A program made the translations under genes and the position numbers. A stretch of DNA of 54,642 nucleotides. Origin: Leidyana gryllorum EB-2025a. Lineage: Eukaryota; Protista; Apicomplexa. Below are positions 3,333 to 29,618 of the stretch, in pieces. Location: assembly GCA_048772705.1 (NCBI GenBank), contig JBLWGC010000220.1, positions 1-54,642 on the forward strand, in the 5' to 3' direction. Numbering within the stretch: position 1 is the stretch's first letter; every line of letters begins with the position of its first letter. Below the pieces are notes generated by a model. It made no database searches. It worked only from the letters and a program-made list of their open reading frames with translations, and was not told the origin of the DNA.

Positions 3333-6269
3333 TTATCCCTTGGGCGTAGATGGGCCTGCCCCACGGAGGCACCTCACGAACCTGAGTACGCGGGTACGCT
3401 GCTGAGCTTTACCGGCTTTGGCCGCCACAGCCTGAGGAGTGACTTGAACCGTTGTAAAGGAAGTCCAGATCGAACTTTGATGCGCCGCCTGCAGTTTCGC
3501 CCTCCGTTCATTTTCATCCCAGTCGATCATCTGCAGTGCGCATCTTTTCTTGAACGATAGCGGCGGCTCCCGTTCGACACCGATCCACGCAACTCTTCTC
3601 CAATCAATGAATGGTGCGAAGACTTTCAAATAGGTCCCCGGCTTCGGGGAGTCCTCCTCGAAAGCGAAAAAGGCGGCCTCGAAATTCTGCTCCGGTGGCC
3701 CCCGTTGCTCTCTCAAGCGTTCCAGCACCCGGACAAACGATAGAATTTCGACTCCACTCGAGCGTTTCAAGGGATACGAATACACTCCGTACACGTTGTT
3801 CCCCGTGCGAACGATGTCGTAATGATTCTCGCTGTCGGTTTCGAGAGGCTCCTCCTCGGCCATCCACAACTCGTGCATCATCCGGTACAGATACGGTGCA
3901 AGTGGGCGACTCCGTCGAAACTGATGCAGTTTTCGCCACACTGGCTGGACTATTTCTCGCCAGTTTGAACACTGCCCGCTTGTGAGGCGGTCCAACCCAG
4001 GCAACAGCTCCAACAGCCAATGCCGCTTGAACTCGTAACCGCACTTCTCGGCCAGGGCGTTCACGGCCACACGCAACTCCACCGGAAGCGGATGAAAATC
4101 ATCATTGACGTCCACGAGCTCGGAGTCGAGAGACGCGAGCAACTTTCCTTTCTCCGGAGTCCACTCGCGGAGCTCATCCATTCTCAGCGACAATCGCCAC
4201 TCACCACCGTCATCGAAGTGCACTACCGTAAACGGTAAGCCCAATACACTCCAGTCGGGTGATCCCGATTCACCCCAGTCCAGGGAGGCGCATGCTGCGG
4301 CTGTTGTCGAGTGGGCCTCGGAGGAGCAGTCGTCGGCTGAGGTTCGATCAGTCCTTCCTGGATAATGAAGGCACATTGCGTTATTCCTCAAATCGAGAGA
4401 AGTGCAGTCGAAAAACACTTTGCGGATGTTCTCATACACCCGTTTAGACCAGAATCGGTCGGGAGAATTCAGGATTTTCGCGAAATCCTTCCGCAGCCAT
4501 TCTCCCCACTCTCCTTCTATTCGTTCGAACAGTGGCGGGATTGCTATTTCCAACTCTTCAGTATCATTCTCCGATGAGAGAGTCGCTAGAGATTCGAGCA
4601 CAGATGCGAAAGGATATTCTCCATTCACTCTGTTCTCCACCACTTGGCTTAACTTATCCACATGAGTGGCAGGGGGCTGCCCGTTCAACTCGAAGGTGAC
4701 CACTGGGATGCCATCCTCCACGCCAGGCGGCGGGAACGCCTGATCTCTTATATACGAGTCCGGTGAGACAACATTTTGCTGACCCGCACTTCCAGAAACA
4801 GACTCTGACTCTGTAATACCCACCGAGTGGTCCACATCTCTGTGCGAGCCCGGCGAGAGAGCACCTCGTTGGCCCCCATAATTCTCGTCTGATCGGGGAG
4901 AAGACTGTGAGAGAGAGTCCCCCTGTGTGGCAGCCAACCATTCGTGCAGATCCGTGTACGTTCCCGGGGACGGAGGTTCTGCTTGAACTCCAGAGTTCCC
5001 GTGTGATGGAGAAGGAGACGCCAACAATGCGTACAGATCCGCGTTGGAGCCCGGGGAGAGAGGTTCTAGTTGAACCCGATAGTTCCCGTGTGATGGCGAC
5101 GGAGAGGCCACCAGTTCGTACAGATCAGCGTAGGAGCCCGAGTCAGAAACCGCTGACTGAACCTCAATTTCGAGTGGTTCGGAAACCGCTGGTTGAGCCT
5201 CAATTTCGAGTGGAGACTCCGTCATGTGAGCCTCAAGCGCCTCATCTGTGCACGGATCAACACTTTGCCGACCTTCAATCCCGCATGGTGACTGAGGCGC
5301 GTAGGAGGTCTGTGAGACAACACTTTGCGCACCCTCGATTGTAAGACCAGAGTCTGAGAGCACTCCTGCCCCTACAATAACCCGCAATTCGTACACCTGC
5401 GGGTACGAACCGGGTGAGGGGATAATGCCTTGTTGACCCTCACTTTCGTGTGGAGGCTGAGAGGCATATTCGATGATGGTGTAGGCCTGCGGTTGCACCT
5501 GATCGCTATGTGTCTCCATTCCGTATGGTTGCAAAGACACTGCACCCATCACGGCCTCATCTGTGTAGGAGGCCTGTGAGAGAGCACTGTAATGGCTCTC
5601 ATCACCGGATGGCGACGGAGGGAGATACACCGTCGCCATGTGGGGTGGCGACTGAGGCAAAGTTGGGAAGGAGTCGAGAGAAACCTGCTGCTGCCTGGTT
5701 GGGCTAGTCGACTCGAGCGAAGATTGGCAGCCAGTGTCCTCAACGGGTGCAGAATCGGCTAAAGTCTCGCTGAATACCTGATCGGGGCTCATCGAAGGGG
5801 GACTACTACTCGCCACAGAATCGAGTGATTGCACATCCCCCGCCAACACCTCCTCAGTCGCCAGGGCTTCCAAAGGATAGTTTAACTCTTCCTGAAGCAG
5901 TTCACTGAGCTCTTTGAAAACATTCGGGTGAAGGGGTGGAGAAAGTGCACCTATTGGGGATTGTCCGGGGATTGAGGACAGTGGGGATTGTAAGGACAAA
6001 GGAGGTAGTGGGGATAGTGCGGGCATTGAAGCCAGGGAGGCATTCTCGTCGGGGCCCCCGCCTTCGTAAGAAAATGTCTGCGACCCTCCGGGTGGGTGAG
6101 CTCTTTCTGCAGAAGGAGGATCTCGTTCGGGAGGATCTTCAGTGGGCGGAGTCGCACCGCCACTGTACCACGGCCGCGGCCAAGACGAAGACGCCAGGAC
6201 GCAACGCAGCAGTCGGAACTGGGAGGTCCTATGGCGTTCTGTAGCTCCAATCCGTACACCGACGCTCAT
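3333..6269 (-). CDS. Orphan protein, leader-family gene 1 (family A), 978 aa: leader ...LLRCVLAS, acidic S/P-rich disordered region, Trp-rich helical C-terminal domain
   Basis: Long uninterrupted ORF with ATG. C-terminal ~350 aa align by eye with gene 2 (e.g. ELREWTPE/ELKHWTPE, LAEKCGYEFKRHWLL/LAEKFKYEFKRFWLL, WREIVQPVW/WSEILQPVW). Confidence 0.85.
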   Translation of the reverse strand: MSVGVRIGATERHRTSQFRLLRCVLASSSWPRPWYSGGATPPTEDPPERDPPSAERAHPPGGSQTFSYEGGGPDENASLASMPALSPLPPLSLQSPLSSIPGQSPIGALSPPLHPNVFKELSELLQEELNYPLEALATEEVLAGDVQSLDSVASSSPPSMSPDQVFSETLADSAPVEDTGCQSSLESTSPTRQQQVSLDSFPTLPQSPPHMATVYLPPSPSGDESHYSALSQASYTDEAVMGAVSLQPYGMETHSDQVQPQAYTIIEYASQPPHESEGQQGIIPSPGSYPQVYELRVIVGAGVLSDSGLTIEGAQSVVSQTSYAPQSPCGIEGRQSVDPCTDEALEAHMTESPLEIEAQPAVSEPLEIEVQSAVSDSGSYADLYELVASPSPSHGNYRVQLEPLSPGSNADLYALLASPSPSHGNSGVQAEPPSPGTYTDLHEWLAATQGDSLSQSSPRSDENYGGQRGALSPGSHRDVDHSVGITESESVSGSAGQQNVVSPDSYIRDQAFPPPGVEDGIPVVTFELNGQPPATHVDKLSQVVENRVNGEYPFASVLESLATLSSENDTEELEIAIPPLFERIEGEWGEWLRKDFAKILNSPDRFWSKRVYENIRKVFFDCTSLDLRNNAMCLHYPGRTDRTSADDCSSEAHSTTAAACASLDWGESGSPDWSVLGLPFTVVHFDDGGEWRLSLRMDELREWTPEKGKLLASLDSELVDVNDDFHPLPVELRVAVNALAEKCGYEFKRHWLLELLPGLDRLTSGQCSNWREIVQPVWRKLHQFRRSRPLAPYLYRMMHELWMAEEEPLETDSENHYDIVRTGNNVYGVYSYPLKRSSGVEILSFVRVLERLREQRGPPEQNFEAAFFAFEEDSPKPGTYLKVFAPFIDWRRVAWIGVEREPPLSFKKRCALQMIDWDENERRAKLQAAHQSSIWTSFTTVQVTPQAVAAKAGKAQQRTRVLRFVRCLRGAGPSTPKG
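4925..5220 (-). repeat. Internal coding repeats of gene 1: ~3 x 78 bp (26 aa; GS-x-ADLYxLxASPSPSHGN) and 2 x 36 bp (PLEIExQxAVS)
   Basis: Visible in the translation and in the DNA (agttcccgtgtgatgg repeated 78 nt apart; cctcaatttcgagtgg twice). Confidence 0.75.

Positions 6270-29618: not shown

Follow-up and report, generated by a model that had tools for sequence, protein, structure and literature searches.

A fixed-format N-terminal leader on two unrelated gene families of the eugregarine Leidyana gryllorum: a candidate atypical signal peptide

Eight co-oriented minus-strand genes occupy positions 3333-29618 of the window (the whole analysed stretch of 54,642 nt, contig JBLWGC010000220.1 of Leidyana gryllorum EB-2025a), and all of them start with a similar leader. 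The question is what this leader does and how many proteins share it. The initial annotation regarded it as a new targeting signal defining a class of secreted or host-delivered proteins. This holds in part: the leader is real, atypical and modular, but the searches recovered only 13 genes with it, and these share no conserved export motif. The reading that we prefer, with a probability of about one half, is that the leader is an ER signal peptide of atypical form and that the proteins, which evolve fast, are probably secreted. By its sequence, the source organism is a eugregarine, a relative of Cryptosporidium from the insect gut; its genome has 15.5 Mb, and its hexokinase is 57% identical to the Blabericola counterpart. 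Eugregarines are largely extracellular gut parasites.

The features of the island are collected in the table. The reading frames of g1-g8 are uninterrupted, which fits the intronless reading, and the intergenic spacers are 76-939 bp. The count of eight genes holds for the leaders; however, g4 covers no more than the N-terminal half of its gene, which is interrupted by a 4.9-kb LTR element. The latter has 183-nt direct repeats at 16591-16773 and 21342-21524, which are 99% alike, and encodes protease, RT, RNase H and integrase domains in one ORF of 1543 aa. On the other side of the element, gX matches the family-B profile (profile positions 43 to 449), and its frame is compatible with that of g4 across the insertion, as judged by stop counts only. 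Together g4 and gX are a family-B gene cut by a recent Ty3/gypsy insertion. The comparison with TE-rich effector loci comes down, in this island, to one LTR element and one coding minisatellite. No telomere repeat was found in the window.

Table. Features of the island, in positions of the window; leader lengths are counted to the small-residue end
Feature	Position	Strand	Description
g1	3333..6269	-	978 aa: leader, then a long disordered S/P/E-rich part and a single family-A domain
g1 leader	6189..6269	-	27 aa, end C-V-L-A-S; resembles g6 leader; two Arg within hydrophobic stretch
g2	6525..13310	-	2261 aa: leader, ~86 eleven-residue repeats, two family-A domain copies
g2 repeat run	9943-12776		33-nt minisatellite coding for the ~86 eleven-residue repeats
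g2 leader	13239..13310	-	24 aa, end L-P-C-I-L-A-S; only ~8 hydrophobic residues
g3	13643..15277	-	544 aa, family B
g3 leader	15191..15277	-	29 aa; 10-residue Kyte-Doolittle hydropathy 2.99
gX	15353..16573	-	C-terminal half (family-B domain) of the retrotransposon-cut gene; no leader of its own
Ty3/gypsy LTR retrotransposon	16591..21524	+	inserted into the g4/gX gene
g4	21496..22686	-	N-terminal half (leader and disordered region) of the cut family-B gene
g4 leader	22606..22686	-	27 aa
g5	22957..24132	-	391 aa, family B
g5 leader	24052..24132	-	27 aa, without Cys
g6	24438..25652	-	404 aa, family B
g6 leader	25575..25652	-	26 aa
g7	25765..27192	-	475 aa, family B
g7 leader	27112..27192	-	27 aa, without Cys at the usual place
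g8	28131..29618	-	495 aa, family B
g8 leader	29538..29618	-	27 aa; Glu within hydrophobic stretch
T-run/TTTTYGGA-type element	29619..29640	-	3-25 nt upstream of start codon; g8 example

The proteins behind the leader belong to two families. These were described as having unrelated globular domains, and this is upheld, the hhalign probability being 0.1%. The family-A domain is Trp-rich and mostly helical; the domain of g1 aligns with g2 and with five genes, c1-c5, of another contig (C213). Outside the leader, the family-B proteins are about 20% identical, and all copies are paralogues. The region immediately behind the leader is disordered and often repetitive; in family B this linker is unalignable. 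The mature proteins are Cys-poor (0.9-2.1%) and contain few N-glycosylation sequons.

No homologues of families A and B were found in 5.8 or 1.8 billion proteins, in Pfam or in PDB. None of the nine ORFs contains a Pfam family, the word-index search with g8 and the family-A profile returned nothing, and the exhaustive HMMER search of 1.84 billion representatives with the family-B profile gave 0 matches, as did the PDB sequence profiles for both families. The ESM Atlas feature search with g8 produced no usable match. The AF2 model of g6 (mean pLDDT 52) is disordered up to approximately residue 180 and has an alpha+beta domain at residues 180-400, where ten-residue blocks have mean pLDDT mostly of 65-80; the model of the g1 domain has mean pLDDT 47 and a core at residues 200-320 with 57-88. 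Neither Foldseek against PDB nor the Atlas shape search matched these models at E<=0.001 or TM>0.4. An MPT64/DUF3298/RsiV-like fold of family B was considered, but the rows, though recurring, are weak, and it was not accepted as an assignment.

The eight N-termini, read from the first ATG, are exactly as quoted in the initial annotation. The leader starts with M-R-P-P-x-C; a basic, polar stretch comes next, then a pair of hydrophobic doublets with Pro-Cys between them, and finally small residues (A-S-S/N/G). Counting both loci, ten of the 13 leaders are exactly 27 aa long, and the end-anchored leader alignment is almost gapless. The Cys (or its equivalent) does lie at residue 20-25 of the eight island leaders, six of which have Cys, with Leu in g5 and Phe in g7. 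Over the whole set, Cys stands between the hydrophobic doublets in 10/13 leaders (position 23 or 26 of the end-anchored alignment), the exceptions being g5, g7 and c1. The n-region is approximately 16 aa in all members, with net charge from 0 to +5. The hydrophobic stretch has 3-8 residues before the Pro and in all 13 leaders is interrupted by a non-hydrophobic pair (Pro, Ser, Arg, Glu or Asn, then Cys or another residue); in five members it contains a charged residue, Arg in g1 and Glu in g8 and c3-c5. Every leader closes with a hydrophobic doublet and, behind it, three small residues, with an aliphatic or small residue at -3 and a small one at -1, and seven of the 13 have Pro 5-6 residues before the end. 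The 10-residue Kyte-Doolittle hydropathy is 1.9-3.0 in family-B leaders and 1.3-2.0 in family-A leaders. In 5/6 leader-bearing family-B ORFs, the 19-residue segment with the highest hydrophobicity in the protein lies within the leader; in g8 the most hydrophobic window of this size (residues 8-26) overlaps the leader. Transmembrane segments are absent throughout.

Shuffle tests place the similarity of the leaders above chance (g1-g6: score 47, p<0.0005; g2-g6: score 36, p<0.0005; g1-g2: p=0.005). No other 30-residue block of family B is as conserved as the leader: its mean pairwise identity is 31%, whereas the domain has 23% and the linker 15-19%. Differences per site in the leader codons are 0.59 at position 3 against 0.51 and 0.48 at positions 1 and 2, and the MRPP codons differ synonymously between copies. 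Since synonymous sites vary in this way, the MRPP start is kept at the protein level.

The choice of the first ATG as the start codon is supported by a T-run element 3-25 nt upstream and by the lack of a second Met ahead of the hydrophobic stretch. Variants of the T-run element precede 11 of the 13 leader genes. Genome-wide, the T-run motif followed by ATG has 33 matches against 6 in the control, and ordinary genes are also preceded by it.

The second locus, C213, contains the family-A paralogues c1-c5. Their leader has the same 27-aa format and a different sequence: ten cross-locus pairs gave p of 0.02-0.67 in the shuffle test, that is, no sequence similarity. The island family-A genes g1 and g2 carry the family-B-type leader (shuffle p<0.0005), unlike their C213 paralogues. 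Judging from these comparisons, the leader has been exchanged between cargo families at least once. This agrees with the earlier claim that the leader is conserved independently of its cargo, as it precedes two unrelated families. The leader of c2 differs from those of c3-c5 by nonsynonymous changes in 13-15 of 27 codons without an indel, and retains the start, the charge and the hydrophobic/small-residue end. It has diverged faster than the region behind it; thus the leader sequence as such is not conserved. By analogy, change of this kind with retention of the format matches the evolution of signal peptides.

Scanning the 15.5-Mb genome with a leader HMM had been proposed as the test of a genome-wide class, and it recovered self matches only. 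The HMM of eight leaders found these eight and one sequence at E=0.4; the HMM of 13 leaders found these 13 and two sequences at E>1. Relatives sharing only the format are invisible to this test, because the eight-leader HMM also missed the C213 leaders. DNA patterns gave a similar result. LPCxxAS has 6 matches genome-wide against 7 in the control, and MRPPxC and MKPLxRP yield self matches and otherwise chance ones. Nine MRPPxC matches with one mismatch were examined, and none starts a long ORF in the leader format: eight of the ORFs have 6-65 aa, and the ninth, with 145 aa, starts inside a longer open frame. The T-run combined with M-[KR]-[VAI]-P has 52 matches against 35 in the control, and these form no clusters. 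A gene of 432 aa whose N-terminus resembles the leader (C104:551036-552331, minus strand) was rejected, being a singleton without paralogues. As the HMMs and DNA patterns recovered only the same 13 genes, no genome-wide class is demonstrated. On this evidence the leader characterizes a small local gene set of 13 genes at two loci, and a genome-wide class is not supported.

The leader was said to be unlike the ordinary signal peptides of the window, and rightly so. Those of the vWA and GH97 genes have 18 aa and n-regions of 2-5 aa, whereas the n-region of the leaders is about 16 aa. The hydropathy is comparable: the 10-residue values, calculated by hand, are ~2.15 and ~2.8 for vWA and GH97 as against the family-B range given above. 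With a classical ER signal peptide the leader shares the N-terminal position, basic n-region and hydrophobic stretch. It also has a helix breaker near -5/-6 and the small residues at -3/-1, and it tolerates substitutions while the format is retained; the -3/-1 rule and the charge of the n-region are as expected. The differences are the n-region, which is not short (1-5 aa in the classical case), the interrupted hydrophobic stretch, charged in five members where a classical h-region is continuous, uncharged and about 7-15 residues long, and the length fixed at about 27 aa.

We suggest the following scheme. The island would be a tandem array of lineage-specific, fast-evolving genes, each encoding a protein that opens with a common secretion-type leader: a long polar basic n-region starting with M-R/K-P, a short split hydrophobic stretch and the small-residue end. 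Signal peptidase may cleave near residue 26-27, at the A/C/S-S then S/N/G end, and leave the disordered region followed by a soluble, Cys-poor domain of family A or B. Entry into the ER, cleavage and secretion are predicted steps. The leader may behave as a module, transferred by recombination from one cargo family to the other within the island. A signal of the signal-peptide type, rather than a new sequence-specific one, is suggested because the format fits and because the c2 leader changed while keeping its length and format. However, the hydropathy of family-A leaders is marginal for Sec61 targeting, the stretch is short, split in all leaders and charged in five, a 16-aa n-region of fixed length is unnecessary for such a signal, and the Cys-poor, sequon-poor cargo is unlike typical extracellular proteins.

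It is unlikely that the leader has no targeting role and reflects descent and local gene conversion only, or else a constraint on the promoter or translation start; translation might then begin elsewhere than at the first ATG in some of the genes. Leader sequence similarity is indeed confined to within each locus, all family-B copies are paralogues, and the spacers are so short that promoter and start elements necessarily lie at or near the 5' end. However, the constraint acts on the peptide, since codon position 3 is slightly more variable and the MRPP codons differ synonymously. Moreover, the leader outlasts the unalignable linker, stands before unrelated cargo, occurs in the same format on C213 without sequence similarity, and has no alternative in-frame Met nearby. 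A membrane-association or regulatory module of parasite-internal proteins, tethered to the pellicle or endomembranes by a palmitoylatable Cys, would account for the Cys between the hydrophobic doublets and the basic n-region; the hydrophobic stretch is too short and interrupted for a classical h-region, and soluble cargo poor in Cys and sequons suits a reducing compartment. We find this quite unlikely, as the Cys is missing from three leaders (g5, g7 and c1), none has a Gly2 that could be myristoylated, the invariant small-residue end with its -3/-1 pattern is left unexplained, and tandem, orphan, repeat-rich, fast-evolving arrays are in general more typical of secreted or surface proteins.

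The reading closest to the initial proposal makes the leader a sequence-specific signal of a new kind, for targeting or export, that would act independently of Sec61 entry or in addition to it. A dedicated protease or receptor would recognize it, and the cargo would reach the host cell, the attachment apparatus or a secretory organelle. Gregarines might then use a distinct export leader of fixed length (~27 aa) instead of an ordinary signal peptide, with dedicated machinery delivering disordered proteins to the host-parasite interface or gut cells, and with the leader shuffled between unrelated cargos. Position-specific conservation of M-R-P-P-x-C and L-P-C-x-L/V-A-S in otherwise ~20% identical proteins points this way, as do the fixed length in ten leaders from two loci, the interrupted core unlike the neighbouring ordinary signal peptides, the modular use with unrelated cargos, and the disordered Cys-poor cargo, which resembles translocated apicomplexan effectors such as MEDLE2 (PMC8687662). 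Still, both forms of this idea look very unlikely to us: the leaders of the two loci have no sequence similarity, the c2 leader has outdiverged the region behind it, neither HMM nor pattern searches added members, no motif of the PEXEL, TEXEL or RxLR type is conserved, and the known apicomplexan export motifs work behind a normal signal peptide, whereas these proteins have none.

Among the large branches of Apicomplexa, gregarines have been studied least, and to our knowledge nothing is known about protein secretion at their interface with the host. If the leader is a secretion signal, as in the preferred reading of an atypical ER signal peptide, it would offer a handle for listing a secretome that standard predictors may miss. 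Leader-cargo shuffling, as in effectors of oomycetes and Plasmodium, would then occur in a lineage close to Cryptosporidium, the sister lineage of gregarines. Should the leader prove to be just a signal-peptide variant peculiar to these families, these are two ordinary lineage-specific gene arrays. Even then the result has value for annotation, because first-ATG models with a polar extension of 16 aa should stay untrimmed.

Several known systems can be compared with these genes. The PEXEL motif of Plasmodium and the TEXEL motif of Toxoplasma (R-x-L-x-E/Q/D or R-R-L) lie about 20-80 residues downstream of a signal sequence, which may be recessed. What they have in common with the present genes is the concept, clustered families in which a module for export stands N-terminally of disordered and variable cargo; however, the PEXEL/TEXEL regular expression has just one, non-conserved, match in the first 150 residues of the 13 proteins, at residue 132 of g6. 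The Crinkler (LFLAK) and RxLR proteins of oomycetes resemble the island in the modular leader that recombines onto unrelated C-terminal cargos, as in g1 and g2 compared to family B. However, no LFLAK-like or RxLR-dEER motif is conserved in the 13 proteins, a single RLLR of g1 being inside the leader itself, and oomycetes are stramenopiles whereas L. gryllorum is an alveolate.

Theileria SVSPs have a low-complexity middle and a conserved C-terminal part. They are a clustered paralogous family of 85 subtelomeric members with N-terminal signal peptides and disordered bodies (PMC2657828). The genes described here are likewise a tandem family encoding orphan proteins, but there are only 13 of them at two loci, and the leader is atypical whereas the signal peptides predicted for SVSPs are ordinary. 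MEDLE2 of Cryptosporidium has a normal signal peptide of 22 aa, and its KDVSLI motif is a separate one, located at residues 31-36, where processing takes place at Leu35 (PMC8687662); the leader genes, in contrast, have no normal signal peptide, no conserved basic-x-x-Leu motif behind the leader and no homology to it. In Cryptosporidium, paralogous families are found in clusters, and their proteins have a signal peptide at the N-terminus and a disordered body; the MEDLE and SKSR families, among others, which are polymorphic, share with the present genes the clustering of paralogues, the N-terminal signal and the intrinsically disordered body (PMC8687662).

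On the minus strand, the region 3333-29618 contains eight long open frames (g1-g8) without interruption, separated by spacers of 76-939 bp, and one retrotransposon on the plus strand. This Ty3/gypsy element splits one of the genes. The two halves, g4 and gX, are both still open and their frames are compatible, as counted by stops across the junction, and thus the island counts eight genes, including the disrupted one. The long ORF of the element begins within its 5' LTR. Gene g2 contains a 33-nt coding minisatellite (9943-12776, about 86 copies, 87% match), which is open in several frames on both strands; this explains the spurious overlapping ORFs 9900-12812 and 9955-12798 on the plus strand and 9914-13045 on the minus strand. 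The segment 1-3332 has neither a long ORF nor a telomere repeat. Two related short frames on its minus strand (1078-1311 and 1586-1918) point to a degenerate repeat at this end of the contig.

Leader genes and adjoining features (bounds of g1-g8 set by the first ATG)
Feature	Position	Strand	Description
g1	3333-6269	-	first-ATG frame
g2	6525-13310	-	first-ATG frame
g3	13643-15277	-	first-ATG frame
gX	15353-16573	-	ninth frame, without leader; C-terminal half of the g4 gene
Ty3/gypsy element	16591-21524	+	183-nt LTRs, 99% alike; 1543-aa gag-pol frame
g4	21496-22686	-	first-ATG frame
g5	22957-24132	-	first-ATG frame
g6	24438-25652	-	first-ATG frame
g7	25765-27192	-	first-ATG frame
g8	28131-29618	-	first-ATG frame
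GH97 gene	30748-33027		textbook 18-aa signal peptide; adjoins the island
vWA gene	33676-34899		textbook 18-aa signal peptide; adjoins the island
c1-c5	G000:C213:66797-87289	+	five tandem family-A genes, 965-1456 aa

The proteins carry one of two cargo domains. Family A, a Trp-rich, mostly helical domain, is present once in g1 and twice in g2, whereas g3, the split gene g4/gX and g5-g8 have in common family B, a C-terminal domain some 250 residues long. Profile-profile comparison of A with B gave a probability of 0.1%. Neither family had a match in Pfam, in a word-index search of 5.8 billion proteins, among PDB sequence profiles or in fold searches with AF2 models of modest confidence, nor had family B in an exhaustive HMMER search of 1.84 billion representatives. 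All the proteins are soluble, lack transmembrane segments, are cysteine-poor (0.9-2.1%) and contain few N-x-S/T sequons. None of the proteins of the window is present in protein collections, and thus this gregarine is unannotated; its DNA was probably sequenced together with that of an invertebrate host. The nearest relatives of the hexokinase exon at 40094-41332 are terrestrial eugregarines: Blabericola migrator (57% identity), Gregarina sp. (50%), Protomagalhaensia (48%) and G. niphandrodes (47%); one further assembly has 66% identity.

Reread from the first ATG, the N-termini of g1-g8 are identical to those in the initial annotation. The leaders (27, 24, 29, 27, 27, 26, 27 and 27 aa, in gene order) can be aligned from their ends nearly without gaps. 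Five of the eight start with M-R-P-P/S, and six have a cysteine at residue 20-25 within L/V-P/S/R-C-x-L/V-A-S/G. Their similarity exceeds chance (p<0.0005 for g1-g6 and g2-g6 in shuffle tests). The leader is the best conserved 30-residue block of family B: its mean pairwise identity is 31%, whereas the globular domain reaches 23% and the linker 15-19%.

Elsewhere in the genome, family A occurs on contig C213 only, in the tandem genes c1-c5. Their leaders are 27-28 aa each. In c2-c5 these consist of M-K-P-L, a basic stretch and T-L-L-C-S followed by S/N, whereas that of c1 begins with M-R-L and ends with V-L-F-S-S. Genes c3-c5 are recent duplicates, 76-82% identical in the first 97 residues. 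The similarity of the leaders between the two loci is not significant (p 0.02-0.67 for ten cross-locus pairs in shuffle tests, lowest for g6-c1). All 13, however, have a common format. A net-basic, predominantly polar stretch of about 16 residues leads into two hydrophobic doublets, which are separated by a non-hydrophobic pair, and three small residues close the leader; position 2 is Arg or Lys in 11. Trp or Phe follows at residues 3-6 past the leader end, at nearly constant spacing, in nine of the 13 proteins (g1-g4, g8, c2-c5). Despite their family-A cargo, g1 and g2 have leaders significantly similar to the adjoining family-B leaders and unlike those of the C213 paralogues, which implies at least one recombination between leader and cargo. 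The independence of the leader from its cargo, initially proposed for the island, is thereby confirmed.

In 11 of the 13 genes, the predicted start is preceded by a T-run or TTTTYGGA-type element at a distance of 3-25 nt, and there is no further in-frame Met ahead of the hydrophobic stretch. Both observations indirectly support the first ATG as the probable start codon. In c2, the start was placed at the second Met because the T-run element precedes it. The TTTTYGGA-type motif followed by ATG has 33 matches genome-wide, against six in the control. It also precedes ordinary long ORFs, and is thus a candidate initiator or core-promoter element, which would imply very short 5' UTRs. An identical 20-mer starting with TTTTCGGACTGCGGC is present on five contigs and is probably part of a repeated element.

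Genome-wide searches covered the assembly of 15.5 Mb in 237 contigs, the window being contig C220. HMMs built from eight and from 13 leaders matched only those same eight and 13 genes; the former failed to detect the C213 leaders, and relatives sharing only the format are likewise invisible to such a search. The DNA pattern for L-P-C-x-x-A-S occurs six times genome-wide, three of them in the window, against seven in the control. The patterns MRPPxC and MKPLxRP without mismatches find known genes only. None of nine inspected one-mismatch MRPPxC sites opens a long ORF in the leader format: at eight sites the ORF is 6-65 aa long, and at the ninth an ORF of 145 aa begins within a longer open frame. 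By these searches, the genome-wide class, for which a leader HMM scan had been proposed, comes to 13 genes at two loci. A single-copy orphan gene of 432 aa (G000:C104:551036-552331, minus strand) has a leader-like N-terminus, M-K-L-R, basic and then hydrophobic; about 225 bp downstream of it, the following start on the same strand gives M-K-A-P.

The leaders differ from the signal peptides of the neighboring vWA and GH97 genes in the 16-aa n-region, in the hydrophobic stretch, which Pro or a polar residue interrupts in every case, and in a charged residue within this stretch in g1, g8 and c3-c5. On the other hand, the peak 10-residue Kyte-Doolittle hydropathy of family-B leaders (1.9-3.0) is comparable to that of these signal peptides (about 2.15 for vWA and 2.8 for GH97, calculated by hand), Pro occupies the usual site of the h/c boundary breaker, and the -3/-1 rule holds at residue 26-27 of every leader. 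The GH97 protein is full-length, with N-terminal, catalytic and C-terminal domains, and the vWA protein is integrin-beta-like. GH97 is unusual in a eukaryote.

One possibility is that the leader has no targeting role and reflects only descent or start-site constraint. This is unlikely; the MRPP codons differ between copies at synonymous sites, which argues for constraint on the peptide. Slightly less likely still is a module by which internal proteins would be acylated or tethered to membranes. A genuinely novel export signal is the least probable. No string conserved among the 13 proteins corresponds to PEXEL, TEXEL, RxLR or LFLAK. In the c2 leader, 13-15 of 27 codons are changed nonsynonymously relative to c3-c5, whereas the following 35 residues are 69-80% identical; the c2 leader shows no insertion or deletion and keeps its start, its charge and its hydrophobic and small-residue end. 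Such retention of format amid substitution is characteristic of a physico-chemical signal rather than of a sequence-specific motif. The likeness to signal peptides and the lack of a conserved export motif favor an atypical signal peptide, which would act on secreted, fast-evolving proteins (probability about one half); a variant signal peptide is the most economical reading. The candidate effector-export system initially suggested is partly supported, namely as a modular, atypical N-terminal signal shown for the 13 genes only; neither the wider class nor delivery into the host is supported.

The exchange of leaders and cargo recalls the leader-cargo shuffling of oomycete Crinklers. Membership in the Crinkler, MEDLE/SKSR or SVSP families fails on both sequence homology and defining motifs. 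The island resembles clustered secreted apicomplexan families in that proteins with a leader, a disordered or repetitive body and a small conserved domain are encoded in tandem, with a transposon nearby. Similar architecture is found in Theileria SVSPs (PMC2657828) and in the MEDLE/SKSR-type families of Cryptosporidium, where, in exported MEDLE2, a signal peptide of 22 aa precedes the motif KDVSLI, which is processed at Leu35 (PMC8687662).
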